A DNA stretch of 64,000 bases from Blastocladiella emersonii ATCC 22665 (lineage: Eukaryota; Fungi; Blastocladiomycota): positions 496,001-560,000 of the forward strand of contig JANHCV010000006.1 of assembly GCA_025594325.1 (NCBI GenBank), read 5' to 3'. This document shows positions 1,696-25,337 of this stretch, piece after piece. The position numbers and the translations under genes were made by a program. Every line of letters starts with the position of its first letter. The first letter of the stretch is position 1. Below the pieces are notes generated by a model. That model was not told the DNA's origin. It worked only from the letters and a program-made list of their open reading frames with translations, and did not search any database.

Positions 1696-2131
1696 CGGGT
1701 TGGGACGCGGCGGGATTGCACGCACGCGCGGTCCTCAGCGCGCGAGGAACCGTACGGAGCGCGCTGGTCGCGGCCGCGGTCGCGCTCATTCGAAACTTTT
1801 AATACATTCCGTTACATTGATCATATGTGTGTTTGAGCCGGCGGGGTGCGCGAGGTGACCTCGCCGACGGTGGCCGCGGCCACGGCTGCTGCACGGCTGC
1901 TGCAGCGGCGCGTGTGCGGAAGAGCGCCTGCCACAGCAATCGTGTGGAGCTGGCACGTGACCGGTCCTCGAGTGCAGGTCCCCTGTGATCCAACCAGTGA
2001 TCCAACCGAGACGCGTCTCCCACCCCTCTCCGCTTCCATATCCCGTTTCTCGTCACTCCCCCGTCATACGCCACCACACCATGTAACACGAATGGAATAG
2101 AATCCCACCATCTACCACTTGATGCCTTCCG

Positions 2132-5100: not shown

Positions 5101-5488
5101 CGCGCACGCCGACGTGCTGCTCGAGACGGCGCTGATCCGCGCGGTCCGGCTCGACCGCGATCTGCGCGCGGCTGAGGTCGCTGCAGCGGCGGCGGCGGCG
5201 GCGGCTGCTGCTGCTGCTGCCGCGGCGTCAGCCCCGGCATCGCGCACGACGACGGGGAAGGGCGGTGGGCGGCGCGGGACCCTCGCCGCGGTCCGCGTTG
5301 CGGTCGGCGGCAGCAGCAAGGGCCGGCGCACGAGCCAGGTCAGCCCAACAACCGCCGCGACATCTTCCGCGCCCGCCGCCGCCGGCGGCCTCGCGCGCGA
5401 CGCGGACGAGGCGCGGAACCCGTTCCCGTCGGTCCCCGGGTCCGCGACCGCGGGCGGGGCGTCAGCGCCGCCCAAAGGCCGTCGTTAG
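2132..5488 (+). CDS. 1118-aa protein with a divergent RhoGAP-like helical domain and long low-complexity regions
   Basis: Single long ORF. TAQYISVLRRPPLFP...RHLRKLDAPSALYFRSIISHLAR...LAYRLATALVPILV follows the RhoGAP helix pattern (LLKxFLRELPEPL / LxxLPxxNxxxLxxLxxHL / LAxVFGPxL). Confidence 0.6.
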   Translation: MPTHRTALLAVHDCLHADCHLAADPLSAAAAEAHLRPHGSARSQRRRHDLNVFRPLPVRVPLGGGKILSPLASRTSSAAIAGSRPSARIGGLVASSEYACGIEFGKVLAQALHPTTRRDRDPDSGRYRQGGNALLFNSFAAITHARPALCLAHLVPLPPNPPVAPAGKLDIGLVPPRVDTLEPVRGTRFAIHLLARRNRGRRRRGGPGDDDDDDDSLDASGRSRTGLPAIDGNGGAVTARGDGGEGDANLDLDIEYFRQLQPISSRSSMQTGDAGAAGYRYTPPAPPKSAGPRASLSARPTVAPVPEASAEDSDAADALARAAAEKGKGSRGGSAGSGGSRDEDDGKDEDLDLDPRLALGEEEDLGNVHTPLLLNRGDSAHDAAAAAGGRGRGMSFLSASAKRAADPRVMEILDLEREALVSGMLDVQAQAINAPGSAAGGASVEDDECLFTFMSDLVLLLMVQRARATGAKSVQYDAQVEAVLDDPMTYFQSMAWTTAQYISVLRRPPLFPATTFVQLVGIVTGTEAGHHEDDDDRTKRKRVRLLFRRHLRKLDAPSALYFRSIISHLARTTDLLDVLPHAGRRTPQLAYRLATALVPILVEPGWVDHVPRTMWMAQAPTQLGAHRPWQTPALRDPVVPDPPPPLGTGRVVDTDEGGAVSESNVSTRPETASSQEDSTDRRRSSVNGGGAISSLFWREHLRRDPRLHPAPDRETFLFLVTDGTEPPDRSLLRLAPDSAGSSAAGTDAGGGGDPIVGASAALLDDSFASASELGDSRPATAPRQPSALVLGASGGDVAGSDLSVNSAATEETDPDPAVAGARAGTAGSTSSSQPDRDADGIALPMRIPSPPANTPSRIVAGARPATAAPLLMARHAALSASRRGGGPGALPRSNVRLAPSSASSTSSTGTLPSSARAPPSPSSFRPRVPHTANTGGARPHTAFADMSHPPPLSSAPSASNFDSVTTPGFAAVPMPRDLVDLAATTLQWVFAHADVLLETALIRAVRLDRDLRAAEVAAAAAAAAAAAAAAAASAPASRTTTGKGGGRRGTLAAVRVAVGGSSKGRRTSQVSPTTAATSSAPAAAGGLARDADEARNPFPSVPGSATAGGASAPPKGRR

Positions 5489-5549
5489 TGGTGCTGTGCA
5501 AGTTGTGTGAGTGTATATAATATTGATCTCTCTCTCTCTCCCCCCCAAA

Positions 5550-7655
5550 TCACCAGTAGTTCGTGCCCGTGTCCGCGTGGTGGAGGTGCGTCGCGGACTG
5601 CGGTGACAGCGGGCCGGGCGGCGGCGGCGGGAACATGGGGCCGCCGTGCAGCCCAGTCCCACCGCCGGGGTGGAAGCTGAGCGGGCGCGCGGCAGCAGGA
5701 GCAGCACCGGGGGCGCCGAGCATGGCGGACATGCGGCGCGACGCGTTGACGGGCGCGGCGCCCGGCCGGAGCTGCGAGTGGGGGTGCAGCTGCGGCGCAA
5801 GCGGGTGCTGCCCCGAAATACTCCCGGACGCGCGCGAGAAGGGCGAGTCGGCGAACGTCAGGCTGGTCGGCGGCGCGCTCTGCGGCGGCTGCGCTGGCGA
5901 CGGGATCATCCACGACTGGCGGCGCGGGTTCGCGGATGCCAGGGTTGCGCTCGGGTGCGTCCACATGCGGCCGGCGCCGAGGGCGACGCCGTCCTCGAGC
6001 TCCTCCTGCTCGGCGCGCGAGAGCGGCGGCGCCGCGGCGGCGCCGACGGCGAGGATGGGGACCATCATGGACCGCGGGCGCGGCGCGGCGGCTGCCGCCC
6101 CCGAAACACCAGGCCACCGCCGCTGCGGTCCCACTCCCGAAGTCGGCCGCTGCAGAGGGCGTTGATGGTGGCGGAAATGTAATGGCGTCGTATCGTCAGC
6201 GCCCTCGGACTCGCTCTCGCTCTCCGCGCCACCGAGCTCCTCGTCGCGGACGGCGGGCAGGTCGGCGGACCGCGTGCGCAGCGGGACGGCGAAGGGCGGC
6301 GGCGGGAGCGGGGCGAACGGGTCGAACTTGGCCGCCACGGGGGGTTCCGCCGCGGGCGCAACGTCGTAGTCGAGGACGGTCGCGGCCGAGTACCGCGGGG
6401 CAACGCCGTCGGCGGGGTTGGAGAAGGTGGACGCGGGTCGGCCGGCGGGGTTGGAGAGCGGCGACGCGGGGCGCCCGCCGCCGACGGCCGAGGGCAGGAT
6501 GACGGATGTCCGCGGCCCGACAAACGAGGCCGGACGCACCGACGCGGGCTGCACGCGCACGAGGCCGTTACTGCTGCGGCGCGGGACGACCGGCGCCACC
6601 GCTGCCGCCGCCCCCGCCGGAGGCTCGACGACCATGGCCGCCGAGACGTGGTTGGTGGCCTCCTGTAGCGCGTTAGCGAGCGCCGTGGTCAGAAACGCCA
6701 TCATCTTCCGGCGCGCACGGGGCGAGGCGGAGGTGATGACAAAGTCGCCGTCGTCGTGGTCGACGCGGACCGAGAGCGAGGCGCCCGCGGCCGCGGCGCG
6801 CGCCGAGGCTTTCGTGTACGCGTCAATGTACGCGTCCGAGAGCTGCAGGGCGGTCAGGGCGCGCGCGTTGAGGGCGAGCGGGATCGGGATGGTCGAGGCG
6901 ACGGGGGTCGCGTCGAGCGCGTCGTCCTTGTCCTTGTCCTTGCTCGACTTGCGCGACGATTTCGTGTCCTTGGACTTACTGCGCGACGCAGCGGCGCTCG
7001 ACGACTTGGCGGGCGACGACGACAGCGACGACGGGGACGCGGACCGGGTCGACGCGGACCCCGATCCCATGGCGGCCGAGAGCGGCGGCGATGGCGGGAT
7101 CCCGCCGCCGATGCTGCTCTTGGCCGACTTGCGCGACTTGGACGAGCGCGTCGACGGCGCGGCCGAGTCGGGGCGCGCGGGCGGCGGGAGCGGGACCGGG
7201 ACCTCGGCAATGGGCGCGAGCTCGGGCAGCGACAGCTCGCGCGTCAGCGACGGCGGCGACTGTGAGAGGAACGGGAGGTCGGGCAGGACCGGCGCCTGCG
7301 CCGCGGGCGGCGGCGAAGGCTGGAGCGCAAGCGCGTCGAGGTGCGCGAGCAGCTGCATGGGCGTGTCGGCGACGTCCGACTCGATGTCGAGCAGCGACGT
7401 TGGCTTGGACGACGTGGTCGGCGTGACGGCGCGCGTGACGCTGGTCGGCGACGGCGCGGGCGTCATGACCTGGAACGACGGCAGCGCGGGGCCCGTGGGA
7501 CCCGAGGGCGAGGCGGGAACGGGAGAGGCGGGGCCGCCCAGCGCGGCAAGGTCGGCGGCCGAGTACCCGAGCTGGTCGCGCAGGAACGCGAGCTCCGTCA
7601 CCGACAGCGTCGCGGGGGCGGCCGCGCCCGACGAGGATGGCGGCGTGGTTGCCAT
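5550..7655 (-). CDS. Hypothetical Pro/Ser/Ala-rich, largely disordered protein (~700 aa)
   Basis: Long ORF with typical codon usage. Likely start MATTPPSS at 7655; ends ...TGTNYW*. No recognisable domain. Confidence 0.7.
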   Translation of the reverse strand: MATTPPSSSGAAAPATLSVTELAFLRDQLGYSAADLAALGGPASPVPASPSGPTGPALPSFQVMTPAPSPTSVTRAVTPTTSSKPTSLLDIESDVADTPMQLLAHLDALALQPSPPPAAQAPVLPDLPFLSQSPPSLTRELSLPELAPIAEVPVPLPPPARPDSAAPSTRSSKSRKSAKSSIGGGIPPSPPLSAAMGSGSASTRSASPSSLSSSPAKSSSAAASRSKSKDTKSSRKSSKDKDKDDALDATPVASTIPIPLALNARALTALQLSDAYIDAYTKASARAAAAGASLSVRVDHDDGDFVITSASPRARRKMMAFLTTALANALQEATNHVSAAMVVEPPAGAAAAVAPVVPRRSSNGLVRVQPASVRPASFVGPRTSVILPSAVGGGRPASPLSNPAGRPASTFSNPADGVAPRYSAATVLDYDVAPAAEPPVAAKFDPFAPLPPPPFAVPLRTRSADLPAVRDEELGGAESESESEGADDTTPLHFRHHQRPLQRPTSGVGPQRRWPGVSGAAAAAPRPRSMMVPILAVGAAAAPPLSRAEQEELEDGVALGAGRMWTHPSATLASANPRRQSWMIPSPAQPPQSAPPTSLTFADSPFSRASGSISGQHPLAPQLHPHSQLRPGAAPVNASRRMSAMLGAPGAAPAAARPLSFHPGGGTGLHGGPMFPPPPPGPLSPQSATHLHHADTGTNYW

Positions 7656-8343
7656 GGCGTTGAGCGGGAGAGCGGTGGCGTCTTTCGGTCTAGGTTGGAG
7701 ACGGTGGCAAGAACCGCAGCGGCAAGTGGTGGTGGTGGTCGATGCGTTCAGCGCCCGCTCGTTCGTTCGCGCAGGACAGCAAGGGTGCAAGTGCAAGTGC
7801 AAGAGGGTGTCGATGCGTGGTGTGCGGGCCTCCTCTCTGGCGGCCGCGCTTGGAGGTGCCAGATGGGAGGGAGAGAGAGAGAGGATGAAGGCGCCGAGGG
7901 GCGGGAGGAGGAGACCCAGCCCGCGTGCGCCCAAGGTCGGTCGCCGCCAAAGCCTAAACGTCGAACTCTACGCTTCTCCCGTGCGAATATTTATTCGACC
8001 TGCGGCCCACGTTGGCAGCGCCGTCGCGCTCGCGAGGTCGTGCTCGCATGTGCGCGCGCCGCCCTTTCACGCCATCCACACGTTGCGGTGCCACGCTCGC
8101 CCGCGGAGGTCCCTGAACCGTGGCCATCGCCATCGCGTTCCCACACTCCCCTCTCCTCTCCTCTCCTCCCTCACGATCGCCATGTTGGCGACCACGACGA
8201 CGACCATGGTGGTGGTGGCCCGATAATCGCAAACGCGAGCACGCAGTCGCTGAGATCTATTTCAAGCGCCACTACGCCCACCGCACTTGCACCCGTGCCG
8301 TGCCCGCCTCGTATTTTCAGCGGTCGACCCATCACCTCCACCA

Positions 8344-10092
8344 TCACATGGCGGCCGCGCGCGCCGCGAGACTCGGGAACCACCGCACCGCGTACGTGCG
8401 CACCTCGACCTTACCCTCCCTCGCCGCGGCGATGGCTGCGGTCCCGCGGAACGTGATGCGCCGCCCGTCGTCGTCCTGCGTGATCCCCGCCGGCAGCGCG
8501 TCGGCCTCCTGCACCACCGCCGGTGGCTCCGCATCGTCGCCGTCGTCGCGTGCGTCCTCGGCCGCCGCCTGCGCCGCGCTGAGCACCTCGATCGTGGCGG
8601 CGGTCCCGCACGCAACCTCGACGCGCGCTACTCCCAAAGGCACCGCACGGAGGAGCGCCGCGATACACGCATCCATCTCGCGTCCGCCCGGTCCCGCGAC
8701 GTCGACCTGGAGCCACTTGAGGCGCGGCGACCCGGCGAGAACCGCCGCGAGCGCGGTGGCCGACGCCGGCGTGACTTGGCGCATGTGCACTCCCAAACCC
8801 GTGAGCGGGCCGTGGTCGGCGTGCACGAGGTTGGGCGACGCGGCAAGATCCGCGAGCGTGTTGCCCCACGCGCAGGGCAGGGCGACGGGCGCCGTCGGGT
8901 CGAGTTCCGCCGCGAGCGCCGTTTCCGCGAGATCGATGGCCCCGGCGCCGACGACCGTGAGCCGGTACACGCGCAGCGTGGTCAGGGAGTGCGGGAGGAG
9001 GCGCAGGAACGCCCGCCACGCGGCGCGCGACGCGACCTCGACGCCGAGCAGCGTCAGGTGCTGCAGACGGCGCGGCAACTCCCCGCCGCCGGCCTCGGTC
9101 CACTTCTCAACCGTCGCCGCCGACAGGGCGATCCCGCCGAGCCGCAGCGTCGTGACGGGACACGCCGCGATCGTGTCCCCGAGCGGCGGCGCCGCGTCGA
9201 GCACCGCCTCAATGGCGGGCACCGGCTCGCCCGTGCCCGCGGACCCGGCCTCGCCCCACGCGTGCGCGAGGGAGCCGTGCACCGTCGACTGCACGATCCC
9301 GAGCTCCGTGATCCCCGTCGTCTCCTCGCCCGCGCTGCCCGCCGCGGCGGCGGCGCCCGCGAACAGCGCGATGCCGAAGCTGAGCATCCTTGGGTCCTCG
9401 GCCGTCACCGACACCGCGCGGAGACCGGGCAGCGCGCCCGCGAGCTCGCCGCGCCGTGCCCGGTGGGCGAGATCGGCCAAAACGGCGAGGTCGGCGATCC
9501 GGTGCAGCGCCTCGAAGTTGACGTTGATGGACGCGAGATTCGCCCTTTTTTGGGATACCGGCGCGGTCAACAGCGCCGCGATATGCGCGCCGAGGAACGT
9601 CGTACGCGGTTTCGCGGGATCCGTCCCGCCGCCGCGCGGCGACGCGTACAGGACGAGTTCGCGGAGCGCCGGGCACACCTTTTCCCCGCCACAAACCGCC
9701 GCAACGGCCGACGACGCGCGGTCGACGGCGAGCCGCGTCACGTTCGGCGTGTACTGGAGCACGCGGCGGTGCCGCTCCTCGTCGTCGCCGCCGTCGGCGA
9801 GGGCGAGCAGGTCCAGCTCGCGCACCCAGCCCGCGTAGTCGGCGGACTGCGGGGTCCGTGCGACCCATAGCGTCTGTGTCATGACGTGCAGCGCGGCGAT
9901 CGGGAGCGGAGACGACATGGGCCAGATGGACCGCCACAGGCGCGGCGCGGACAGGGCGAAGGTGCTGTGTGAGCAGTACAGCAGCGCGCGCAGGTCGGGC
10001 AGCGACGTGACGTGGTCGGCGATCAGGCCGAGGACTTCGGGCGGCAGCACGGCGAGGCGGCCGAGTGACTTTGTCGGTGGTGATTGATCCAT
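8344..10092 (-). CDS. F-box protein with LRR-like C-terminal region
   Basis: N-terminal LAVLPPEVLGLIADHVTSLPDLRALLYCSH fits an F-box; LxxLxL repeats follow (VTRLAV, LRELVL, VTTLRL, LQHLTL, LTTLRV, LKWLQV). Confidence 0.75.
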   Translation of the reverse strand: MDQSPPTKSLGRLAVLPPEVLGLIADHVTSLPDLRALLYCSHSTFALSAPRLWRSIWPMSSPLPIAALHVMTQTLWVARTPQSADYAGWVRELDLLALADGGDDEERHRRVLQYTPNVTRLAVDRASSAVAAVCGGEKVCPALRELVLYASPRGGGTDPAKPRTTFLGAHIAALLTAPVSQKRANLASINVNFEALHRIADLAVLADLAHRARRGELAGALPGLRAVSVTAEDPRMLSFGIALFAGAAAAAGSAGEETTGITELGIVQSTVHGSLAHAWGEAGSAGTGEPVPAIEAVLDAAPPLGDTIAACPVTTLRLGGIALSAATVEKWTEAGGGELPRRLQHLTLLGVEVASRAAWRAFLRLLPHSLTTLRVYRLTVVGAGAIDLAETALAAELDPTAPVALPCAWGNTLADLAASPNLVHADHGPLTGLGVHMRQVTPASATALAAVLAGSPRLKWLQVDVAGPGGREMDACIAALLRAVPLGVARVEVACGTAATIEVLSAAQAAAEDARDDGDDAEPPAVVQEADALPAGITQDDDGRRITFRGTAAIAAAREGKVEVRTYAVRWFPSLAARAAAM

Positions 10093-10760
10093 GGGTTTGC
10101 GTTGTGTTGCGCTGACAAGGGGAGAAGGGACGCGCTGCGACGAAGGCGCCTTCGACGGGTGCAGGGCTTTGCCCTGAAATATTGGGTGGCCCCTTCGAAA
10201 GTCTCGGTCTGTGTCACGTGATATATGGAGACTTGTCACTTCTGTCACGTCACGTGAGTGGCTGAACGCGTGGTCGCGCTAACACTTCCTCTCTTGCGGT
10301 TCTGTGCGGAAGGTAAACCCACCACAAATATGCTTATTGTTGCTACTACACGTTATGCAAGTGTCTTTTCATTCACTGACTGCCGTCCGGCTTCAGTCGC
10401 CCCCACATCGCGTCTGCGACCGCACCATGTCTTGCGCGTTCCTGTCTGCAAATGAGAAGCAAAATGGAGCTGCTGTTACTGTGAAATTTAAATCATTCTT
10501 GATTACTTTATTGTCGTGCTGCACGACATGATGCGTAGCAACAATCGCCTGGAGAACGATGGCGTCGCGCGGCGAAGATGGGTCGCGACATATGATCTTC
10601 CACTCGATCACGGAGCTGCTGAGTAGCACGACATATTGTATCTGGTAGTAGCGCGGCAGAAACGTTGCCTTACTTGGCTGACGCAGACTAACCACGCGGC
10701 TAACGTGAACGACGTTCATTACGTTCGTCTTCGCGCGTCGTCCTAGTCCACGATCATGAG

Positions 10761-11169
10761 CTCAACAAGGCGACGCTGATCTTCGGCACAACGGGACAAC
10801 GCTGGTCATCAAAAAAACGAGGCGACGCTGGTCATCAACACAACGAGGCGACGCTGGTGACCAACTCGACAAGGCGGCTCTGGTGACCAACTCGACAAGG
10901 CGGCTCTGATTGTCAACTTAACAAGACGACGCTGAACATCAACTCAACAAGGCCACGCTGATCATCAACGCAACAGGGCGACGCTGATTGCTAGCGCAAC
11001 GATGCGACGCTGGTCATCAACGCAAAGAGGCGACGCTGAACATCAACTTCACGAGGCGACGCTGTTCACGACCCAACAAGGCGACGCTGGTCGCCAGCAC
11101 AACAAGGCAACGCTGATCACCAACTCGCAAGGCGACGCTGGCCATCAACTCGACAAGGCGACGCTGGCA
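10761..11169. repeat. Degenerate 26-bp minisatellite, ~16 units (consensus GGCGACGCTGGTCATCAACTCAACAA), left block
   Basis: Units read directly, e.g. ggcgacgctggtgaccaactcgacaa and ggcgacgctggccatcaactcgacaa. Period mostly 26 bp; no ORF in the track. Confidence 0.92.
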
Positions 11170-11559
11170 TGTCTTGCTTAACGGAGCTCGGACCTAATTA
11201 ATTGCTCATACAACGGGTATCACAGTGCATTGCAGTGAGCGGCCAGCCAGGAAAAAACTCCGCCTTTTCCCCGCCCGTGCGTTCAAGCCACGCGGCTCAT
11301 CTGGGGACCCGCGCGCCGGTCATTCTACGTGCGCAAAGCGGCCCGCACTCGCCTCGAGCGACCCGCTTGAAGTCCGTCGTCCCTCGCCGTCGCCCTCACT
11401 CTCTCCCAGAACCGGTCGAACCTTGACGGGCTCTCATGTAACTCTTAGAAACGACGGTGGAAGTTGCTGCACGTGACCGCGGCCGCCCGATGCGGGTCAG
11501 GGCGGGAAGACCGCGTCAGTCCTCGCCGATCCCGCGCCCCGTCACCGTTTGCGGACCCG

Positions 11560-12160
11560 CTGCTTGGCTACAGGGAGTTCGTCAACCCAGGCGTGCGCGC
11601 AAATCTCAGCTGCCGCGTGCGACCGCACCACGAATTGTCCCGCGCGCTCACGATCCCGTTTGGTGCTCGCGCAGCTCACGATCCCGTTTGGCGCTCGCGC
11701 AGCTCACGATTCCGTTTGGCGCTTGCGCAGCTCACGATGGTGTAGCATTCGATGCCGCGCAGCGACAGGGGAGGGGGGAGGGTCTCCCTCCCCCCGGCTC
11801 TCAAAGAAACACCTGTTTGCCTTCCTGTGAGAAGTGCGGCGAGTCGACTATGAGGTTGCAGACACGGCACGTCGCGGTAGTTCATTCGCGAGCACCTCCC
11901 CACGTTTAAGTTGTCGGACGCTGCCACGGGCGACGCGAATGAGTGAGAGACACGTTCGCCGATGGACGAAGAAGCAACACCTGATTATTGCTGATTTCGT
12001 GCGGTACTGTTGAAGAAACCTGCTCAAGACGACGGTGTGCAACGTGAAGATGTGTTCTGCAAGGCCGAATCCGCCGTCTGACAGCGCGCGCGGTGAGTAA
12101 CACACGGTGTATGATTCCTGCCTCGCGAAGAGTTTTTACAGGCGGCCTGTGACCGGCCAC
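11560..12160 (-). mobile_element. Probable decayed non-LTR (LINE-type) reverse transcriptase fragment
   Basis: Minus-strand pieces in different frames: HRPPVKTL..IIHRVLLT (~YRPISLL..KIxxRVL), GGFGLAEHIFTLHTVV..QQYRTKSAIIRCCFFV (~GFRxGxSxxDHIFTLxxxxEKY..CFxD), RAGGRETLPPPL (~RGVRQGxPLSP), possibly HAWVDEL (~YADD region). Confidence 0.45.
11646..11738. repeat. 28-bp tandem repeat (GCTCACGATCCCGTTTGGCGCTCGCGCA), 3.3 copies
   Basis: Units start at 11646, 11674, 11702 and 11730 (partial). Confidence 0.95.
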
Positions 12161-12171
12161 GGAGTTGCTAG

Positions 12172-12285
12172 TCAATTCGACAAGGCGATGTATAATCAAC
12201 GCAACGAGGCGACGCTGGTCACCAACTCAACACAGCGACGCGGATGATCAACCCAACAAGGCAACGCTGGCTGCCAACAGCAACA
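12172..12285. repeat. Same 26-bp minisatellite, right block (~4 units)
   Basis: ggcgacgctggtcaccaactcaacac, ggcaacgctggctgccaacagcaac and neighbours match the left-block consensus. Confidence 0.85.
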
Positions 12286-12631
12286 CTTCATCGACCTCGC
12301 CATTACGCGCAACCTGAGCTTCAGCGTGCTCATTGGCGCTAAGCGCAGGGTCAGCACTACTTAGTAAGCGTTCGCTTGCATGTCGGGAGGTGGGCGCGTT
12401 GTACGATTTAGTCTGGGAGTGCGAGAGCGTGCACGGCGCGAGGCTGGGCAAGGGTGAAAGGGCAAAGCCCTGCGCCGGTGGCAGCCGAAGGCTGTGTGAC
12501 GGCAAATTGTGAGGTCGGCAGCTGCAGGCGACACGTGCTTAAGCGATCGGCGCGCGTCGGCTTCTCTCGCCGACGACGCCACTCGGCCACTCGCCCTCTC
12601 TCTCTCCCCCACCAAACCGCGCAGACAAACC

Positions 12632-13903
12632 ATGGAGCATCCAACCGACACCAAGTACACGAGCTTCCCTGCACCGCCGCAGACGCCGGTGCCCGCCTCC
12701 GCCTCGGCCGCCGCGGCTCCGGCCGCCCTCCCGCTGCCCGTCCCCGCCCCACCCGCGCCGCCGCGGCGCACCGACCACGTCGCCGACTTTGCAGATGACG
12801 ACGATCCGTACGACGACGACGACCTGCTCGCCGGCCCGTGGTCTCTCGCCACCTCCCGCCCGACACGCCGCCCCTTCTTCTCGCTGCAACCTCGCCCGGT
12901 CCCGACGCTCATCTTCTTCGTCGCCGCGATCCTGTACACGTACCTGGCCGGCGGCCGCGCGCACCTGCCCGACTCCGGCAGCATCCCGCGCCCGGCGCTC
13001 GTCTCGCCCGTGTTCCAAGCGCTCCTCAGCGCGGCCGCGCCCGCCGTGATCGGCGGCCTCAAGCAGGTATGGATCCCGAACCCGAAAGACGACCTGGTCG
13101 CGGGCCCCGCGGGCTGGGCCGGGCACGCGAAACGGTACGGCCTCGTCAGCGCCGCCCTGTACGGCGCCGGGCTCGCGGACCTCGTCGCGCTGCGCGCCGC
13201 CGGGCCGATCCCGGTCGTTGCGGTCTCGGCCGTCCTCCCCGTCCTCGTATTGGGGTTGGTTCGGCGTGTTTCGTCGCGCGCCGTCGCAGGCGCCGCGGGT
13301 GGGCTGACCCCGCGGCTCGCGGCGGGGCTCGCGGCGAGTATGGCGGGCATGGTCCTCCTGGCGCTCGCGCTCGACGAGGAGACGACGCGCGATACGGCGG
13401 CCGTCTCGTTCGGCACGCTGCTCGCGGCGCTCGCCGGCGTCGCGTGCCGCGCGTTCGTGCTCGTCTGGGCCGAAAAGTATTTCGTCGAGAACGAGTCGGA
13501 CCCGTGGGTCCTGGTCCACCACCTCGTCCCCGTCTCGCTCGCGTGCGGCGTCGGGGTCTGGCTCGTCTTCGACCGCACCCTGCCGTGGGGGATGACGGGC
13601 TGGTTCATGCCCGCACTGCGCACCGCGACACTGTCCGGGACGGGCGTGCTCGCGTCCGCGTTCCTCGTCCACCACGTGTCGTCGTTCGCGCTCGCCGTCC
13701 TCGAGCAGATCGTCCACGCCGTCCTCCTCGTCATGTACTGGCAGCTCGAGAACGTCAGTATCATGTGGTACGGCATCGTCGGCGTCGCCGCGTTTGCGGG
13801 CGGGCTCAAGTTCGTCGCGCCCGCCTCCGCCGGGTCGTCGCGGCCGGGGAGCCGGACGGCGTACGCGCAGGCGCCCGCGGCCGAGAGTACCGAGTCGCTG
13901 TGA
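12632..13903 (+). CDS. Drug/metabolite transporter superfamily membrane protein (SLC35/TPT-like)
   Basis: Pro-rich N-terminus followed by ~9-10 hydrophobic helices; GTLLAALAGVACRAFVLVWAEKYF and SSFALAVLEQIVHAVLLV resemble TPT/SLC35 motifs. Confidence 0.65.
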   Translation: MEHPTDTKYTSFPAPPQTPVPASASAAAAPAALPLPVPAPPAPPRRTDHVADFADDDDPYDDDDLLAGPWSLATSRPTRRPFFSLQPRPVPTLIFFVAAILYTYLAGGRAHLPDSGSIPRPALVSPVFQALLSAAAPAVIGGLKQVWIPNPKDDLVAGPAGWAGHAKRYGLVSAALYGAGLADLVALRAAGPIPVVAVSAVLPVLVLGLVRRVSSRAVAGAAGGLTPRLAAGLAASMAGMVLLALALDEETTRDTAAVSFGTLLAALAGVACRAFVLVWAEKYFVENESDPWVLVHHLVPVSLACGVGVWLVFDRTLPWGMTGWFMPALRTATLSGTGVLASAFLVHHVSSFALAVLEQIVHAVLLVMYWQLENVSIMWYGIVGVAAFAGGLKFVAPASAGSSRPGSRTAYAQAPAAESTESL

Positions 13904-13940
13904 TATATACCCCAAATGTGACTTTATTGTATAACTACTA

Positions 13941-16900
13941 CTAGAACTCGTCATCATCCTCGGGCGACCCCGCGCGCGCCGCCGCCCCACTCGCCGCTGG
14001 ACCGCCGCCGCCGCCGCCCCCTTCGTTATCGCTCTCGAACGAGAAGAACGCCGACATATCCGTGGGCGAGCTCGCGACGGCGCCCGCGCCCGCTGATGAC
14101 GAGGACGAAGGGAGCATCCGCGGCGACTGCGCCCCGGCGGCGGCGGACCCGAGACTCGCGAGCTGCGACCAGTTCGGGTTGCCGCCGTTGTTCGCCAGCA
14201 TCGCCAGCGCGGCCGGCGACTGCAGGAACGCCATGAGCGTCTCGCTCGACGGGAGCGAGGCGGCGGCGGCCGCGCCGACCGAGGATGAAGTGGAAGAGGA
14301 GGAGGAGGAGGAGCCCGTGTCGTTGGCGTTGGGCGAGCTGCCGAACATGGCCGCAAGCACGTCCGACGGCGTCAGGAGCGGCTGTTGCTGCGTTGGTTGA
14401 GGCGGGTCGGGCATCCCCGCAACGGCGGCGAGCGGGTCCATGTTGAGCAGCGCGTCGAGGTCGAGCTCGTCAAACTCGTACTGCTGCTGCTGGTGCTGTT
14501 TCGAGGGCGCCGCCGTGATCGCCGCGACCGCCGACGACGCGACGCCGTCGATCGAGTGGCCCAGCGACTCGAGCTCGCCCTGGATCCGCGACGCCGCCGA
14601 GTTGAGCCGCGTCAGCTTCTCGGTCGAGTCGCGCAGCGAGTCGAGGTCCATGCTGCCGCTTCCGCCCAGGGACGCCGCCACCGCCGCCGTGGTATCAGCG
14701 GCACCGCCGAACCCGTCCAGGAACGACGGCAGGCCCGCGGGCGGACTCGCGGGCGCCGGCGGCAGGACGTCATCCGCGACACTCGCGGTGCCCGCCTTCG
14801 CCTTGCCCTTACCCTTAGCCGCCGCCGGCGGCGCGCGCCCCGCCGTCTGCCCGCGCGCGCGCTTCGCGGCCTTAGGCGGCGGCGGCGCCGCAAGGACGGG
14901 CGCCCCGACCGGCTGCTGCGGCGAGACGGGCGGGCTGGGGGTCGGCGTGGCGCCGAGCTCGGAGATACTCGCGAACGGCGCGGGCATGTGCGGCGACGTC
15001 GGCGAGTCGGGGAGCGGAACAATGTTGGCGATGCCCATGCCCGCGGCCGCGGCGTGCGGGTGGTGCAGGCGGTGGTGGTGCGGGTCGGCGTCGTCGGCGT
15101 CCGAGTCGTGTTCCGCGCCGGTGCCGTTGGCGGCGGCGGCGGGGGACGAGGTGGTGGTGGTGGTGCCGGACCCCGAGCCCGAGCTGCTGCTGCTCGGCAG
15201 GTACTCGAGCAGCTTGCGCTTCCGCGCGCGCGAGGGTTCGGGCGAGTGCGTCGCGAAGCCCGCGGCGGCGGCAGCGGCAGCAGCGGCGGCGGCCGCGTTC
15301 TTGCCGAGCTTGTCCTTGCCGCCGCCCGCCCCGGGTCCCGCGCCGGGCCCGGCGCCGCCGTTGTACATGGTGGCGAGGAACCGGAGGATCTTGTCGATGG
15401 TCAGCTGCTGGCGCTGCATCAGGTCCTTGGTCGCGATCAGGTCGCGCCACAGCAGCTGGATGTGCGCCTGCAGCTCCTTTTGCTCGCTCGACAGGACCAT
15501 CTGGTGCTTGCGCACGGCCGTCACCTCGCCGAGGACCGCGGCCACGTCGGCCGACGACGACGAGCCCGCGCCACCGCCGCCGGTGCCGCCCTCGCCAGGG
15601 GTGTCGGCGGAGTTGGTCGCGGCCGAGGCCTTCTTGCGGTGGATGAAGCACAGCAGGTCGCGGCGGTCGCGCAGAAAGTGGTCATTCGAAAACTCCCACC
15701 GGTGGTCGTCGGCGCCGGCGCCCGCGAGCGTGCCCTGCGTGATGTGCGTGACCTTGTAGAAGGCGTACATGTTGAGCTGGCGCACGAACGACGAGAAGTT
15801 GGAGTGCTTGAAGTAGCGCGGCAGCACGGCTTTCGCCAGCTCGTCCTGGTTCTCGACCACAAACGAGTTGCCCGCCGCCGACCAGTGGATCAGGTCATCC
15901 GTGCTCGCGTCGCTCACCATGTCGTACAGCTTGATCAGGAACTGCGACACGTGCTTCGACAGCGTCAGGTTCGACGTCGACGCCGCGGCGGCGGTCGTCG
16001 GGTCGTTGGCGATGGTGACGGGCAGCGCGCGCGTCGCGGCGGAGGCGGACGCGGCGCCCGGGAGCGCGGCGGGCGTCGCGGACGAGGACGAGGCGGCGGC
16101 GAGCGCGACGACGGCGGTCGAGCTCGAGGCGGTGGGCGCAGAGCCTGCGCCGGCGGCAGGGACCAGGTCCTTGGACCCGGACGCGACGAGCGCCGACGAG
16201 GTCGACGCAGCAGCGGCAGCAGCCGCAGCCGCAGCGGCCTTGCTCTTACCCCGCCCGCCCGACTTGGTGGTCGTGGTGGCCGTGGTCGTCGTCGTCGTCG
16301 TGGTCGTCGCAGGCGCAGGCGCGGGTGCCGGCACAATCACCGGCGCCGGCGCGACCGCTGCAGGGACGGGCGGCATCGCGAGCGCGGCCGTCGCGAGCGC
16401 CGCGGCGATCGCCGGGTCCACCACGGGCGCGACCGCCGTGAGGTCGCGCGCCGCACCACCCCCAGCGACAGGTGCCGCGGTGGCGGCGACAGGCATCATG
16501 GCGCCGTGCGTGCCCGCGCCCGTGAGCGCGTACGAGTCGAGCGGCGGCGCGCCGTACATGCCGAGCCCGAGCATCCCGAGCGACGCGTACGGGTTGAGCC
16601 CGCCGGCGCCGCCGACACCGTTTGCGAAGTTGGGCGTGGCTCCCGCGGCAGCGGAGGCGGGGTACCCCGCGGCCATGGCAGCGGCGAGACCCGGGTACTG
16701 CATCGCCGCCGGGTAGCCCATGGCGGCGGCGGCAGCGGCGGCGGCGGCCGGGTGCATGGCGTACGGCGACGCGAGGTGGTGGTGGGTTGTTGAGGCTGGG
16801 GGTGCGGGCAGCGAGGAGGAGCCCGCGGCGCCGTTCATGTTCAGGAGACCCGGGAACGGGTGACCGTTGGCCAGCGTGTACGGCAGCGACGCCGACGCCC

Positions 16901-17051
16901 CCGACGCCGTGCGCAGGAGCGGTGGCGGGTGCTGCAGCGGCGGGCGGACCGGGGCGGCGGCGGTGCCGTTACTCGTGGTGGTAGTGGTGCCCGACGAGGC
17001 GGTCGCCGGCGCCGGCGGCGGCGGATGCTGCGCCGTGGTCGGATTGGACAT
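13941..17051 (-). CDS. HSF1: Heat shock transcription factor
   Basis: HSF DNA-binding domain FLIKLYDMV..LIHWS..GNSFVV..LAKAVLPRYFKHSNFSSFVRQLNMY..WEFSNDHF; HR-A/B coiled coil EVTAVRKHQ..QQLTIDKILRFLATMY; single 1036-aa ORF. Confidence 0.93.
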   Translation of the reverse strand: MSNPTTAQHPPPPAPATASSGTTTTTSNGTAAAPVRPPLQHPPPLLRTASGASASLPYTLANGHPFPGLLNMNGAAGSSSLPAPPASTTHHHLASPYAMHPAAAAAAAAAMGYPAAMQYPGLAAAMAAGYPASAAAGATPNFANGVGGAGGLNPYASLGMLGLGMYGAPPLDSYALTGAGTHGAMMPVAATAAPVAGGGAARDLTAVAPVVDPAIAAALATAALAMPPVPAAVAPAPVIVPAPAPAPATTTTTTTTTATTTTKSGGRGKSKAAAAAAAAAAASTSSALVASGSKDLVPAAGAGSAPTASSSTAVVALAAASSSSATPAALPGAASASAATRALPVTIANDPTTAAAASTSNLTLSKHVSQFLIKLYDMVSDASTDDLIHWSAAGNSFVVENQDELAKAVLPRYFKHSNFSSFVRQLNMYAFYKVTHITQGTLAGAGADDHRWEFSNDHFLRDRRDLLCFIHRKKASAATNSADTPGEGGTGGGGAGSSSSADVAAVLGEVTAVRKHQMVLSSEQKELQAHIQLLWRDLIATKDLMQRQQLTIDKILRFLATMYNGGAGPGAGPGAGGGKDKLGKNAAAAAAAAAAAAGFATHSPEPSRARKRKLLEYLPSSSSSGSGSGTTTTTSSPAAAANGTGAEHDSDADDADPHHHRLHHPHAAAAGMGIANIVPLPDSPTSPHMPAPFASISELGATPTPSPPVSPQQPVGAPVLAAPPPPKAAKRARGQTAGRAPPAAAKGKGKAKAGTASVADDVLPPAPASPPAGLPSFLDGFGGAADTTAAVAASLGGSGSMDLDSLRDSTEKLTRLNSAASRIQGELESLGHSIDGVASSAVAAITAAPSKQHQQQQYEFDELDLDALLNMDPLAAVAGMPDPPQPTQQQPLLTPSDVLAAMFGSSPNANDTGSSSSSSSTSSSVGAAAAASLPSSETLMAFLQSPAALAMLANNGGNPNWSQLASLGSAAAGAQSPRMLPSSSSSAGAGAVASSPTDMSAFFSFESDNEGGGGGGGPAASGAAARAGSPEDDDEF

Positions 17052-17611
17052 GGCGGCGGCGCAGAGTGCAGCGAGTTAGGGTCGGTGGTTGATGCGTCGT
17101 CGTCGTTGGTTGAGGGGGAGGGGGAGAGGAGGGAGGGCGGATGGACCCGAAACGGTGAATCGATGACGGAGCGAAAACGCGGACGGACGGCCGTCGTCGT
17201 CGCGGGCTTCCCGTCGGTCGGTGGCCACGGTGGCAGAACGAGGAAACGTGTGTATGAGACGAGGAAAAATTTCTAGTAGGAAGCAGAGCGATGCCCGCGC
17301 ACAGCCACGGTGGCCGGGCCGGCATACTTGTAGTTGCCGCGGCGGAGGCGCGGTCCGCGGCTCGGCTCGGCGATCGCACCGCCACAAGTAGTGGCTCGAT
17401 GGCCGACCCGCGATCCACATGGACGGGACACGCGCCGCCGCCGTGGGAACGCTGCCGAACGCGACCGAAGCCCGTGTCCGCGACCGTCACAGCTTGTTGC
17501 GCGCGCCTCCCGCGAGCCCCGCGAGCCCGAGGTCGAGCCCCAGCTCCGCTTCCAGCTCGCGCAGCGCCTGTTCGGCCGACCGCACCCCTACATGAGTCCA
17601 GCGCGCGAGGG

Positions 17612-18534
17612 TCAGGTCGACGCGTGAAGCGGTCGTGGCAGGGCGTGAAGCGCCTTACAGATGGTCTGCATCCCGACGCGCTGCGCCGCGCGGATGTTGA
17701 CCGCGAGGTCGTCGAGGAACACACACTCGTGCGCGGCCGCGGCGAACCCGGGCGCCTCGAGCAGCGCGCGGTAGATGGCCGGGTCGGGTTTCCGCAGGCC
17801 CACCACGCTCGACCGCACCACCACGTCGAACTGCGCCATGAGGTGCGCGATGCGCGCCTGCACCGCCGCGGGGGCGCGCGCTGCGAGGTCCGCCGGGACC
17901 GGGAAGTCGTTGGTGATGCAGCACAGCACGTACTGCCCCGAGGCTACGACGCACGGCGGACGTGAGTTCTCCGCTCGTCTCAGCGATGCGGCGATGGATG
18001 GGAAGGGTACCGCGGATCCGCTCAATTGCGGCCACCATGGGCTCGACCGGGACGCTCGACTCGAGCATCATGGACTCGAACAGCGCACGCCCGTCGATCA
18101 TCGCGGCCGCCGCGGCGACGCGCTCCCAGTCCACTTCTTTCGCGGTGGCGTCGGCGGCGCGCTGCTGCCGCGCGTACCACTTGCAGTACACCTGCACATG
18201 CCGCGGCTCGCGCAACCACGCCGTGAACTCGCTCACGAACGCCTCGTACGCGAGCTCGCCGCGCTCGAACCGCTGGAACGGGCCCTGCTCGCCAGCGAAC
18301 CCGCTGTCCCCCTCACGGTGCAAGCGTCAGCTGCTGTGCTTCTCTCACTGAGCGCGCTGCGGAGCCAGCGTACATGCACACGCCAATGTAGTTGGCCGGC
18401 AGCCCGACCCACCGCTCGTACCGCCGGATCGCGTGCACGGGCGACCCGACGCACACGCCGCCCAGGTCGAACACGACCGCGCGGATCTTGCGCCCGGGAT
18501 CGGCGGTAGCTCTCTCGCTCGAAGGAGAGTTCAT
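17612..18534 (-). CDS. HAD-family hydrolase (epoxide hydrolase N-terminal/ACAD10-like phosphatase), spliced
   Basis: Motif I AVVFDLGGV, CITND (motif II), RKPDPAIY (III) and CVFLDDLAVNIRAA (IV), spread over three frames joined by at least two introns. Confidence 0.85.
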
Positions 18535-20327: not shown

Positions 20328-22194
20328 GGTCGCGGAGAGTTCCACTGGCGCTTACATTCATCAGGGTGATCTCACCGATCTCAGTGCTTCCCCTCTCGCT
20401 GGCCGCGACGGCGGCCGCGGCGACGGCGGGCGGCGTAGGTGAGTGGCGCAGCGCCATCGCGTGACCTCACTTGATGCGTTGCGGGGCGAGCGGGGTGCAC
20501 GAGACGCTGGCGGGACGCCTGCGGCGGCAAGCTGGCGCAGCGAGAACGTGGAATGGAACGCGAAAAGAAGCCGCGAAAGAGTGTGTTTCAGAGCTCGCAA
20601 ACGACCTCGTGTTCAGTTCCCAGTGAAAACGACTGTATGCGTGGTTCGCAGGGCCGGCTCGCTAAACGAGCCTATAGTCTTATGAGGACGCGAGCTCACC
20701 GGCACATGTCCGCTCGGACCGCACGCGTTCACGCTTCTCATCCTCTCTCGCGACCGTCAGCCAGCGCTGAAAAATCGATCAAAAAAGGTGCAAAAAATCT
20801 GCATTCAGGGAGCCGTGCTTTTTAAGGGTTACAATGGCGAAGCGATGGGCCGTGAAACAGCGTTGGCCTCGTGCGTCAACTCTCTGATGTATTGTAGAAG
20901 GGAATCGAGAGATTGTAGCGTTTTTGACCCGATGCAAGCGAGGGTTTCATATCCTGGCAGCAACGCTAGAGCCGGCGGTATGAGTACCACTAGATCATGA
21001 ACTACGTCAACGCTTGTCTCCGCTTCGTTGTTTTGGGCACGCGCGCCGCAGCGAAGGTCGCGCTTAGTCTGAGCGTCAACAACTCCCGCGACCACAATGG
21101 TTGTATGCAAGCGGACGGGTGAGCCTAGGTAGCAACAGCCACTGGCCCAGCAGCAGGCAACAAAGGTTGAGGACCGTCTCGGGCAGCGACGTTCTGCAAC
21201 GCCCATGACCGTGGCCGTGGTCGCGGTCGCGGTCGCGGTCGCGCACAGGAAGGACAATGATCGCGACTGTGACCTGTGTTCGAGGTTGCTATCCTTGGAT
21301 CAGTCATGGTTGCTTACTGGTCACCCCTCTTTTCGGCTTGTCTGCGTATCCAATCCGCCCCGTCTCGAGACCCCCAAGGAGAACAACGCCCTTCTGCACC
21401 CTTTTGATTGAGAGATTCGTTGCTCTTTCCCTCATAAGCGACAGTCCCGACTCGGGAGACAGGGCGCTTCGGACGTGAAAGGTGTTGTAAAATCGCGTGA
21501 CCTGATCACGCGTCGCGCGCGAGACGCGGCTCAAACTGAGGATCGGCTCGTTTTTTTGTACCATAAACGTGATTGGGGTCAAGATCTGCGCGACGAAGGC
21601 TACCGCGGCGTCGCGAGCTGCGCGTGCGGCGTCGACCTTTTTCGCCAAAACCTCGTCATCATTCCCGTGCACCGGTATCGCATGATGATCGTGTTTCCTG
21701 AAGCTCATTGAATAAATTTCACTGAATGTTAAAAGAACGGAAGTGTTGCGTAAAACGTGCCTATCGTGGTAGAGCCGTTTTGAACGGTGGATCTTGTCAC
21801 TCAACAGATTAAGAGTCTCAGTGTTCGAAGCCGGCTGCGGCCCATTGGGCGAACGACTTGCTCCGTCCTTCGCAGACAAACACGCTTCACAGAGGACAAC
21901 TCGCGGTCGGACCTACGGGCCACCGGTGTTGGGAGGGAGTGTTGCGTAAAACGTGCCTATTGTGGTTATGGCGGCTCAAGCCCCGCCACCGCCCGCCACC
22001 GCATCGCGCTTTTGCAGATCGCACTTCGCGTCCGTGTGCCACACCACCACGTGATAAATGAACGCGTCTCCGCTGTCTCGCGCGGTCACATGAGCTCGCC
22101 TGATGCGAAGCGATCAATGAATGCGGTCGGCGGCGACGAAAAATCAGGGGACGGTCACCGCGGCCGCCCGTTTCTAGCCCCGTAAACCACGGCC

Positions 22195-22860
22195 ATGAAG
22201 CTGAATGCACTACCCGTTTCCTTGGACGAGCTCGTGCACCTATGGTTTATCCATGGCTGCAACGACAAGGCGACGTCCGAGGAGCTCAAACGTCGCTATC
22301 TGAGTACGTGGCTCACCACCCGCCACGGAGAAGCTCAAGGAGCGCGGAGACACCACACGGCCGTGAGCCTCGAACTTGTTTTGACAACCACGTCCGCTCC
22401 CTCGCGTAGTTTCGGCGTGTGCTTGTTCGCTGGCGTCGAATCGTACTCGCGCATGATCTTCTACATACACGCCGTCACGCGCAAGACGTCCATGGTCGCG
22501 TACAGCTGCTTCTGGTACGACTTTTTCTTGGACGCCCGCTCGCCCGCGCTCGCGCTGACGCGCCCAACGTGTTCGTAGCGCCGCGATCACGGCGTAAGCA
22601 TGTTCGACCAGGTTCTCGTCGACAGCGGGAGCGAGAGCAACCGGCTCGAGTTCGTGCAGGTCCAGCTTCACAACCACCTTCCTCCAACCCGCGGCATGGG
22701 TCCCGCGGTCCAGCGCGTCGCGTCCACGGCCAACATCCGCGTCGAGTACCCGTGGCGGTACCCAAACCGCAGCGTATCCGAGCTGCGGCTTGGGACCCTC
22801 GACCGCATGGATATCGACGGCCATTTCGACCTCTCGGACCCCATGCACAAGTTCACGCGT
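22195..22860 (+). pseudogene. Integrase-core (rve-like) DDE transposase, intron-containing, frameshifted and internally deleted
   Basis: FGVCLFAGVESYSRMIFYIHA (~GFVIHGGIDGYSRxIxYL), DQVLVDSGSES (second D), ASTANIRVEYPWR (~STHNQRIERLWR, E). Intron GTACGA..GCTGAC..TAG ends at 22578, followed by an apparent 1-bp loss. Confidence 0.75.
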
Positions 22861-23239
22861 GCGCGAGATCAGTCGCCCAACTGCCTGGATTCTGCGTCGA
22901 ATTATGCTCCTACATCCTCACCTTCATCGAGATCACGAAGCAGCTCTCTGAATCGATTGAAATATAGTTGTGCACAACCCTGACCGTCTTGAGAAGAACT
23001 TGGGAGAACTCGATTGGCGTTTCGACCCACAAATCGCTGGGTCGCGAGGAATGAACAATTTGGCCATGGTTGGCACGATGGCCATGGTCATGGCCATCGT
23101 GATCCGTTCCGATCCCGCTCAAAGGACGCCAAAAAAGCGAAGTAGGAACGAAAAGGGATACTTTTTTTTGACGTGGAAACGAAACTAATAGCGAGAATAC
23201 GAGAACATGAGAAAACGAGATGCAGGGGGCGATTTGCAA

Positions 23240-24079
23240 CTAGATCGACCGCAGACTATGTTGAACCCAGCGAGCGGAGTCGATCGCGTGAAGCTTGAAG
23301 CCAGCGGGACCGTCGTACACCGCGCTTCTGCCAGGAACCGGCGCCTTGGCCTCGGCCGGCAGAACCAGGTCAACGGGACGCTCGCGGGCCATGATCTGCG
23401 TGACGACGCACTGGGCCCCAGTGCCGCCGTGCATCTTGACGGAGTCGCAGCACCCGCGGTGCTCGGCGCGAACGCTGGACAGCTTGGCGTTGAACTTGTT
23501 GACGGCTGCGGGGTACGAGGCGACGTGCTCCGCGATGTACGCGAGCTCGTTGAACGCACGCAGCGTACCATGACCACGTAACTCGAGGGACTTGTTGAGC
23601 TGCCGCCGTAGGTGAACAATCAGCGCAGCAACAAAGGTACCATCCGCTTCCGCGAGTTTGGTCAGCGGCGCGAGCTATAGCAAGTGCGACTTGGTGCATA
23701 AGTTCACGAGCGGGCGGGGTCCGCGGATCGGAGGCAAGACGCGCACCGACATGCTCGACCTGCGAGAAGCAAGCGTCCACGGGGTGAAAAACGTCGCGCC
23801 TGGCAACGTGGCCCAGTTGTTGTCGACCTCGCAGCGGCCGCACCAGAGGATGGGTCGATCGAGAGCCATCGAGTCTATGATCTCCTCGGCGCAGCGGACG
23901 CACACGGCGAGCGAGCACGAACCGCACGCGTGAACGTACAGGGTCTTACACGCCGGGTAGGCTAGATTATTGCCCGTGAGCGTCGGCGAACGATCCCATG
24001 CCAGCCGTGAAAGGAAAAAACGTACCACAGCGACTACAGACCGTGCTCTTGACCGCCGCGTCGTCATTGTCACCGTCAA
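23240..24079 (-). CDS. Second, Cys-rich (putative Zn-binding) protein of the IS3EU-like element, probably spliced
   Basis: ACKTLYVHACGSCSLAVCVRC..WCGRC. The TAG at 23675-77 fits the acceptor of an in-frame GTGCGC..TAG intron; the frame is then open to 23240. Confidence 0.5.
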
Positions 24080-25337
24080 AGTCGGTATAGAGTTGAACAG
24101 TCGTCATGGTGAACGACGTCTGCGTCGCATTTGGGCCTCGAAAGCAGGATGAGGTCGGGCTAAGCAGAGCTCTCGCCAGCTGGTTGCAGCAACCGTTCCA
24201 TATTTCGTCGCCGCCGACGCCGACGTTGATCGACGAGCGTCAGCCGAGCTCATGTGACCGCGCGAGACAGTGGAGACGCGTTCATTTATCACGTGTTGGT
24301 GTGGCGCACGGACGCGAAGTGCGATCTGCAAAAGCGCGACGCGGTGGCGGGCGGTGGCGGGGCTTGAGCCGCCATAATCGTGGTAGAGCCGTTTTGAACG
24401 GTGGATCTTGTCACTCAACAGGAAGTGATCTTCGCCGCCGGTCCCGGCGCGAAGCGAGAGCACGAAATGAACGACGCGTCGCACGCGCGTCGCGCCACAC
24501 GGTTTCAGCCGTGCTTTGCGCGTTGTCCGCGTACGCGAAGAGGCATGGAATCGAAAGACCCTCAGGCTTCACGCGTAACCCGTACGACGCGTAAAGCGTA
24601 TCAAGGAAATCATCGGAAAACGGGCGAAACGCTTCAACAAGCGATGGGCCCCATCCGAGAGCTGCGGTAGATTGAGTACGGGTGTATTTCGCAAGTTCGC
24701 TCGGTCTCAGAGACCTGGGCGTCGATCAGGCCAGACAAGCTTTCTCGCATACCATTAAACCGCAACTCGAAGTGCCGAACAAGCGACGTCTCAAGCTGGC
24801 GTCTAGTACGAGGTTAACCTTCAATCCGCGTGCCGAAGGGTGCTTTCCGGGTTGCCTCTAACTCTTCACCAGTGACGCTATGCGCGACGCGGAATCTTCA
24901 CGCGCGAAGGATAGTGGGCGAGCAAGCGACGTCGCGCGTCGCAACGCGCGCAAGTGCGATGTCCGACCTCGCCCGCGCAAGCGCAGCAGCGCGCTCAACC
25001 ATGTCCATTTAAGTGAAGACATAAAGTGATTGCATAAAGTCTGGTTGCTTTACGGGGAGCGATTCATGTGGTCCATAGCTTGCAAGGAGAGCGTGCGCGT
25101 GGTGCGAGCCGAGAGACTGTGGCGTCGCCTGTGCTCAGCAGCACGTGCGTGGCTCAGCGCGCTTGCCCTTCCTGCTTCAGTCCTGCGCACGCGTGCCCAT
25201 GTGGGCCGACGTCTTTGTTGCGCTCACGAGCTGCCCTCGACTGTGGCGTACCCCGACGCCCGCAAAGGAGAGGACAAAGCTGGCCTTCGCCCCCTCCCTC
25301 TCCCGTGTCCGCTCGTCGCCTGGAAGCAGACACAACC

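Follow-up and report, generated by a model that had tools for sequence, protein, structure and literature searches.

What kind of element do two short direct repeats mark in the genome of the fungus Blastocladiella emersonii ATCC 22665 (Blastocladiomycota), and how would its reverse transcription have been primed? The repeats lie on contig JANHCV010000006.1 (C18 below; the locus is C18:517739-520425) of assembly GCA_025594325.1, in a stretch of 64,000 nt (positions 496,001 to 560,000) that we call the window; positions without a contig label are window positions on its forward strand. The initial annotation, made from the letters alone, proposed a terminal-repeat retrotransposon in miniature (TRIM), a tiny non-coding element with long terminal repeats (LTRs). 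Our analysis bears this out: the locus reads as a non-coding Ty1/copia-type LTR retroelement in miniature, which measures 259 bp without a transposon that is nested in it, and we put the probability of this reading at roughly 0.8. It is carried by the element's tips, polypurine tract (PPT) and target-site duplication (TSD), by solo LTRs with other TSDs elsewhere in the genome, by a primer-binding site (PBS) that matches a host tRNA, and by the same junctions in autonomous Ty1/copia elements. The features by which TRIMs are recognized are thus present within the locus, namely TG..CA terminal repeats, a small non-coding body, a tRNA-complementary PBS, a PPT, and a 5-bp TSD.

Anatomy of the element and its dispersed repeats

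The 63-bp TGTTG..CAACA repeats, the 133-bp interior, the purine tract, and the GGAAG duplication were all found where the initial annotation had placed them. The parts of the locus are as follows.

21739 to 21743, forward strand: left TSD, GGAAG, read directly and the same as 24421 to 24425.
21744 to 21806, forward strand: 5' LTR, 63 bp, TGTTG..CAACA, 100% identical to the rejoined 3' LTR.
21807 to 21820, forward strand: PBS, 14 nt, abutting the 5' LTR; complement of nt 27 to 40 of the host tRNA-Lys(CUU).
21807 to 21939, forward strand: interior, 133 bp, non-coding (frame check) and unique in the genome (search at E<=10).
21931 to 21939, forward strand: PPT GGGAGGGAG, abutting the 3' LTR, read directly; its GGGAG/TGTTG junction also occurs in the copia elements L086 and L090.
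21940 to 21966, forward strand: first 27 nt of the 3' LTR (repeat family D4); the last 8 nt (21959 to 21966) are one copy of the nested element's TSD, ATTGTGGT.
21967 to 24376, no strand assigned: nested later insertion, 2,410 bp, foreign to the retroelement, with terminal inverted repeats (TIRs) of ~178 bp, an 8-bp TSD, and further copies.
24377 to 24420, forward strand: last 44 nt of the 3' LTR (repeat family D1), 100% identical to 21763 to 21807; the first 8 nt are the other TSD copy, ATCGTGGT.
24421 to 24425, forward strand: right TSD, GGAAG, read directly.

The 3' LTR is recovered by joining its two pieces (27 and 44 nt) and subtracting the 8-bp duplication of the nested element, which leaves 63 nt. 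With the insertion set aside in this way, the two LTRs agree at 63 of 63 positions, and the sole difference between them is a CpG C>T change in the left copy of the nested element's TSD (ATTGTGGT versus ATCGTGGT). The nested element is a separate, later mobile transposon. Its TIRs are 89 to 91% complementary, and the uninterrupted 5' LTR contains ATCGTGGT once (21763 to 21770), which represents the empty site for the insertion. At least two further copies (C15:2376269-2378644 and C20:295582-298000; 96% identity) stop at the same end bases, which identifies a discrete mobile element and justifies setting it aside. Read depth over the nested element is 2 to 8 times that of its flanks. Its open reading frames (ORFs) matched no Pfam family at E<=0.1, and the element is probably non-autonomous.

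The interior holds no open frame longer than the piece itself, shows no similarity to the copia proteins in hand, and has no second copy at E<=10 in the genome searched, which comprises 32.65 Mb in 21 contigs. Contigs assembled from the short reads of three source-sample runs span the left flank and 5' LTR, the interior, 3' LTR and nested element, and the right junction, all without differences. As the read contigs match every junction, the element is not an assembly artefact. Among the reads of four runs, all made from a single sample that probably also gave the assembly, we found no further copies of the element and no allele lacking either the retroelement or the nested insertion. The left flank has no paralogue beyond a weak 75-bp match, and no empty paralogous site was found by way of it.

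Mobility of the 63-bp unit is indicated by its occurrence at three further sites in the genome. The copy on C19 is complete (63 bp, 91 to 93% identical) and is bounded on either side by GAACG; that on C20, also of 63 bp, is 89% identical, begins with C, and lies between two copies of GCGTG. The third, on C2, is a 5'-truncated piece. In every copy, similarity ends sharply at CAACA. As such, the lone copies look like solo LTRs, and the full insertions of the 63-bp unit number three, each with a different perfect 5-bp duplication (GGAAG, GAACG, and GCGTG). Three different perfect TSDs imply several independent integrase-mediated insertions of the unit. The initial annotation had held that copies with different TSDs would support the element and that a single copy, with the same flanks at orthologous loci, would reduce it to a local duplication. 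The solo LTRs supply the different TSDs, and their dispersal rules out local duplication. No further complete 259-bp copy was found in the genome, so that in place of the several dispersed complete copies typical of a TRIM there are two full solos and one truncated one.

The tRNA-Lys primer-binding site and its copia relatives

The 14 nt that follow the 5' LTR (21807 to 21820) are a perfect complement of nt 27 to 40 of the genome's own tRNA-Lys(CUU), whose gene was located by pattern search and with ARAGORN. The pairing takes in the entire anticodon loop, the 5' side of its stem, and two bases on the 3' side; the match is therefore to an internal region and not to the 3' end of the tRNA, and it stops after 14 nt. 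The calculated duplex energy is -25 kcal/mol, versus -12.9 for the best pairing with the LTR. Genome-wide, the reverse complement of 21807 to 21821, with at most one mismatch allowed, occurs only in tRNA-Lys genes, in the 259-bp element, and at an LTR/PBS junction on C15 that is present in duplicate, while the reversed control of this 15-mer pattern gave 0 matches. When ACA plus 12 nt of the PBS was used as the pattern (again with at most one mismatch), only the element and the C15 pair were retrieved, and the control again gave 0. The tRNA-Lys(CUU) genes found with the 15-mer sit in a 6.8-kb tandem unit on C14: at C14 ~1797-18417 (L019 to L021), genes for tRNA-Lys(CTT), Gly(GCC), Val(AAC), and Glu(CTC) form a unit that is repeated, with unchanged layout, at a period of 6,803 bp.

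Among fungal copia elements, a PBS of the same type has been reported for the clade FunCo1 (Donnart et al. 2017, PMC5445492), and the published PBS word is exactly 21808 to 21818. Judged by its letters, then, the stretch after the 5' LTR is the PBS of a known fungal copia type. Where the initial annotation saw no canonical site and offered either self-priming or an internal tRNA fragment, the second idea holds, with its 14-nt tRNA-Lys complement, and the first does not (see below). What looked like an LTR element with no primer site is thus readily accounted for by priming from inside tRNA-Lys, the style known from FunCo1 copia elements.

Within the same genome, this PBS is also found on C15, where it follows a 171-bp LTR (TGTTGCG..TTCAACA). 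Both this LTR and the 63-bp one start with TGTTGCG, and they have little else in common beyond the tips and a GATCTTG(TC) word. A solo copy of the 171-bp LTR on C6 is ~80% identical and has the TSD ATGGG on both sides, which adds a fourth 5-bp word to the duplications found for the element (GGAAG) and for the 63-bp solos (GAACG and GCGTG). This C6 solo set the LTR length at 171 bp and led us to reject a 55-bp LTR with a preceding PPT at C15, the purine word being internal. The C15 junction is present twice as part of an 8-kb inverted segmental duplication (C15:1826369-1834411 and 1843827-1851872; L024 to L026), whose arms are 99.8% identical, lie 9.4 kb apart, and carry, in addition to the LTR/PBS relic, host-like genes for a TRAPP component and, as a weak match, trypsin. 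From ~170 bp past the PBS of this relic, ~3.6 tandem copies of a ~103-bp GC-rich unit, 80 to 86% alike, occupy L024:5550-5925.

Autonomous elements with the same junctions were found in metagenome contigs. One scan for CAACA followed by the 14-nt PBS yielded 10 contigs, and in 6 of these, Ty1/copia proteins start within a few hundred bases past the PBS. Four (L086, L089, L090, and L094) encode copia-type gag, a Pol beta-barrel, gag-pre-integrase, integrase, an SH3-like domain, and RVT_2; two others (L092 and L093) encode gag and protease. The PPT/LTR start of the autonomous relatives reads GGGGAG/TGTTG; at greater length, the transition is ATGGGGAG/TGTTG in L086, GCGGGGAG/TGTTG in L090, and AGGGGAGG/TGTTG in L089, compared with GGGAGGGAG/TGTTG in the 259-bp element, and the motif GGGAG/TGTTG is common to the element, L086, and L090. 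The search for an autonomous element sharing termini and PPT, suggested by the initial annotation, was thus successful in the metagenome contigs and unsuccessful in the element's own assembly; partners are known from the metagenome contigs only. In L086, the distance from the pol stop codon to the PBS is at most 119 nt, which gives an LTR of 95 bp and shows that short LTRs also occur in coding members. The L086 contig is 4,533 bp long with a frame of 1,426 aa, and its end overlaps its start in circular permutation, which could reflect a collapsed LTR, a tandem copy, or a one-LTR circle. In L092, the 14-nt PBS word appears once more in inverted orientation (L092:517-530), ~500 bp upstream of the copia element, at a place where ARAGORN finds no tRNA gene.

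The metagenomic copia elements share 30 to 38% protein identity with each other and 24 to 34% with the copia elements of the B. emersonii genome. Since the PBS is shared despite mutual identities of only 30 to 38%, the primer site is conserved across deep divergence, and its presence both in a flagellated fungus and in copia elements so far apart suggests that the choice of primer is old. The range of this PBS type, described in Pezizomycotina, now also takes in a flagellated fungus of an early-diverging lineage as well as divergent copia elements.

Alternatives, counter-evidence, and a possible mechanism

A number of observations weigh against the reading of the locus as a miniature Ty1/copia retroelement. 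There is one complete copy only and its interior is unique, so that the miniature itself may never have transposed. No autonomous element with its PBS was retrieved by pattern searches of the 32.65-Mb assembly. The C15 relic has neither reverse transcriptase nor integrase within 30 kb and no 3' LTR; for these reasons, and in view of the host-like genes nearby, this locus was rejected as an autonomous partner. The genome contains ~25 matches to copia reverse transcriptase (and none to the copia gag family PF14223), and the copia families with readable 3' LTRs (n=3) have other tips, AGTT..AACT and TGCTG..AGCA; these LTRs were delimited by comparing copies, and the tips are known from the 3' ends only. 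The reverse transcriptase matches include C18:392846 (family A), C5:1102958 and C8:125361 (family B), and C5:1053202 (family C). In addition, the GGGAG that precedes the 3' LTR resembles the TSD GGAAG at 4 of 5 positions, a likeness that we read as chance between purine-rich words. Lastly, an LTR of 63 bp leaves little room for a promoter, an R region, and a termination signal, none of which was identified in it.

Among these copia families of the B. emersonii genome, two have an LTR that begins with AGTTCAAG after a GGGGGAG tract and ends in ..CTTCAACT, so that the tips are AG..CT and not the usual TG..CA (read from the 3' ends of copies L027 to L029, L031, L039 to L043, and L047).

The alternative that survives best is a one-off event, in which a full-length copia element with 63-bp LTRs was inserted and then lost most of its interior in place. 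We regard this as a serious possibility, though the less probable account. It fits the single complete copy and the unique interior, and the solo LTRs at three other sites could equally be the remains of full-length copies; moreover, an autonomous relative has a 95-bp LTR, so a short LTR need not imply a miniature. However, neither remnants of gag or pol coding sequence nor likeness to any copia element in hand can be seen in the interior, and no full-length relative was found in 32.65 Mb, so that in-place deletion needs the loss of all parents together with the intact survival of the shortest derivative. On balance, transposition as a miniature is slightly favoured over shrinkage in place.

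Far less probable is a local duplication or a pair of insertions, 133 bp apart, of a 63-bp unit resembling a miniature inverted-repeat transposable element (MITE) with 5-bp inverted tips. The unit does occur alone elsewhere with its own TSD, and the 3' unit (family D4) lies between GGGAG and GGAAG, a match at 4 of 5 positions. However, the flanks of the 5' unit by itself do not match as a TSD would (GGAAG versus GATTA), while the two units taken together lie in a perfect one; the tRNA complement and the purine tract lie between the units just as they are placed in autonomous copia elements; and the same PBS follows a different LTR on C15. As such, this alternative is close to refuted.

Self-priming in the manner of Tf1, in which the transcript would fold its own 5' end onto the leader and need no tRNA, would account for the absence of a TGG-type PBS, and we consider it similarly improbable. 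The longest complement between LTR and leader is 5 nt, in contrast to ~11 nt between LTR and PBS in the Tf1 type, and 5 nt is at chance level (reached in 1295 of 2000 shuffles), whereas the 14-nt tRNA-Lys match is kept among copia elements of only 30 to 38% protein identity. Least probable of all is that the tRNA-like 15-mer belongs to a minus-strand, tRNA-Lys-derived short interspersed element (SINE) or to a tRNA pseudogene. In its favour, the minus strand resembles the tRNA-Lys(CUU) anticodon arm, and a B-box-like GTTCGAAGCC stands at 21823 to 21832 on the plus strand. Against it, the window contains no tRNA according to ARAGORN, a search of 21500 to 22200 against Rfam yields neither a tRNA nor a SINE family even at E<=10, both the strand and the side of the B-box-like word are wrong, and the tRNA likeness ends after 14 nt.

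If the locus is a miniature Ty1/copia retroelement, its life cycle may have resembled that of copia and Ty5. Its RNA would have been packaged by the Gag of a helper and reverse-transcribed in trans by the proteins of an autonomous copia element. By analogy, a 5' fragment of tRNA-Lys(CUU) ending at nt 40, paired with the 14-nt PBS, would have primed the minus strand, and the GGGAGGGAG tract may have primed the plus strand. Integrase would then have joined the TGTTG..CAACA ends into the chromosome, giving rise to the GGAAG duplication. At a later time, the 2.4-kb inverted-repeat DNA transposon landed in the 3' LTR. The element is now inert, since its 3' LTR is split and no coding element with the same PBS is left in the assembly.

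A further possibility concerns the helper. The element may represent an orphan miniature lineage that went on moving, cross-mobilized by copia elements with other tips and having no helper that shares its PBS; its LTRs of 63 bp would be minimal yet working, with room for a promoter, an R region, and a termination signal. We consider this doubtful. If true, no smaller LTR retroelement would be known from fungi, and the element would offer a natural test of which cis-signals copia-type reverse transcription from half of a tRNA-Lys needs at the least. A copia family in the B. emersonii genome that combined GGGAG/TGTTG with CAACA/GATTAAGAG would be the helper, and should there be none, the orphan lineage gains in probability.

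Comparison with known miniature and copia elements

The initial annotation had presented the element as near-minimal in size, as unusual for a fungus, and as perhaps primed non-canonically, a novelty that is overstated on all three counts. In a plant survey, the smallest TRIM was CcaRetroS9 of Cajanus cajan, at 233 bp with 52-bp LTRs (PMC4717578), and FRetro129/SMART of grasses has 292 bp with 85-bp LTRs and a 122-bp interior (PMC3281118). The 259-bp element is therefore not a size record among TRIMs: its 63-bp LTRs are shorter than the classic TRIM range of 100 to 250 bp yet lie within the published range (minimum, 52 bp). TRIMs are also a routine class in fungal repeat annotations, and the PBS type was already known from FunCo1. 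For B. emersonii itself, the assembly paper (PMC9730499) contains no transposon analysis.

The element resembles plant TRIM and SMART elements in its two short, identical TG..CA repeats, its PBS, PPT, and 5-bp TSD, its non-coding interior of ~120 to 130 bp, and its solo LTRs. As with SMART, the candidate helper shares only short cis-motifs with it and not the body of the LTR. In contrast, plant TRIMs are present in tens to thousands of complete copies, whereas the 259-bp element is present in one. The PBS of plant TRIMs usually corresponds to the 3' end of tRNA-iMet, while that of the 259-bp element corresponds to an internal part of tRNA-Lys(CUU); its host, moreover, is an early-diverging fungus, and no helper is found in the same genome. 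FunCo1, for its part, consists of full-length coding elements and is defined by reverse transcriptase/RNase H phylogeny in Pezizomycotina. The 259-bp element, by comparison, lacks coding sequence and comes from Blastocladiomycota, the likeness between the two lying in the PBS word.

Tips of the form TGTTG/CAACA together with a half-tRNA PBS have been described for Ty5-like elements (preprint 10.1101/2025.04.25.647736), and half-tRNA priming has been described for Drosophila copia and yeast Ty5 (PMC5371799, with Ke et al. 1999 cited in it). The likeness to copia and Ty5 thus covers the TGTTG..CAACA tips and a PBS that pairs with the anticodon stem-loop, so that an internally cut tRNA primer is required. 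In Drosophila copia, primer pairing ends at tRNA nt 39; in the 259-bp element, it ends at nt 40. Primers made from tRNA fragments were reportedly also described in Candida by Goodwin and Poulter in 2000. Copia and Ty5 use initiator tRNA-Met, whereas the 259-bp element would use tRNA-Lys(CUU), and they are autonomous and experimentally tested.

Taken at this scale, the locus is a very small element of a known type in an under-studied fungal phylum. With 259 bp and 63-bp LTRs, it bears on how little sequence an LTR needs, yet it does so as one dead copy and not as an active system.

The insertion lies between two ORFs on the minus strand, 21304 to 21708 and 24426 to 24725, neither of which matches a Pfam family at E<=0.1, and no reading frame is continuous across the insertion through the rejoined flanks. 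The first of these ORFs (134 aa) starts ~35 bp from the left end of the element, so that the insertion is located just upstream of it.

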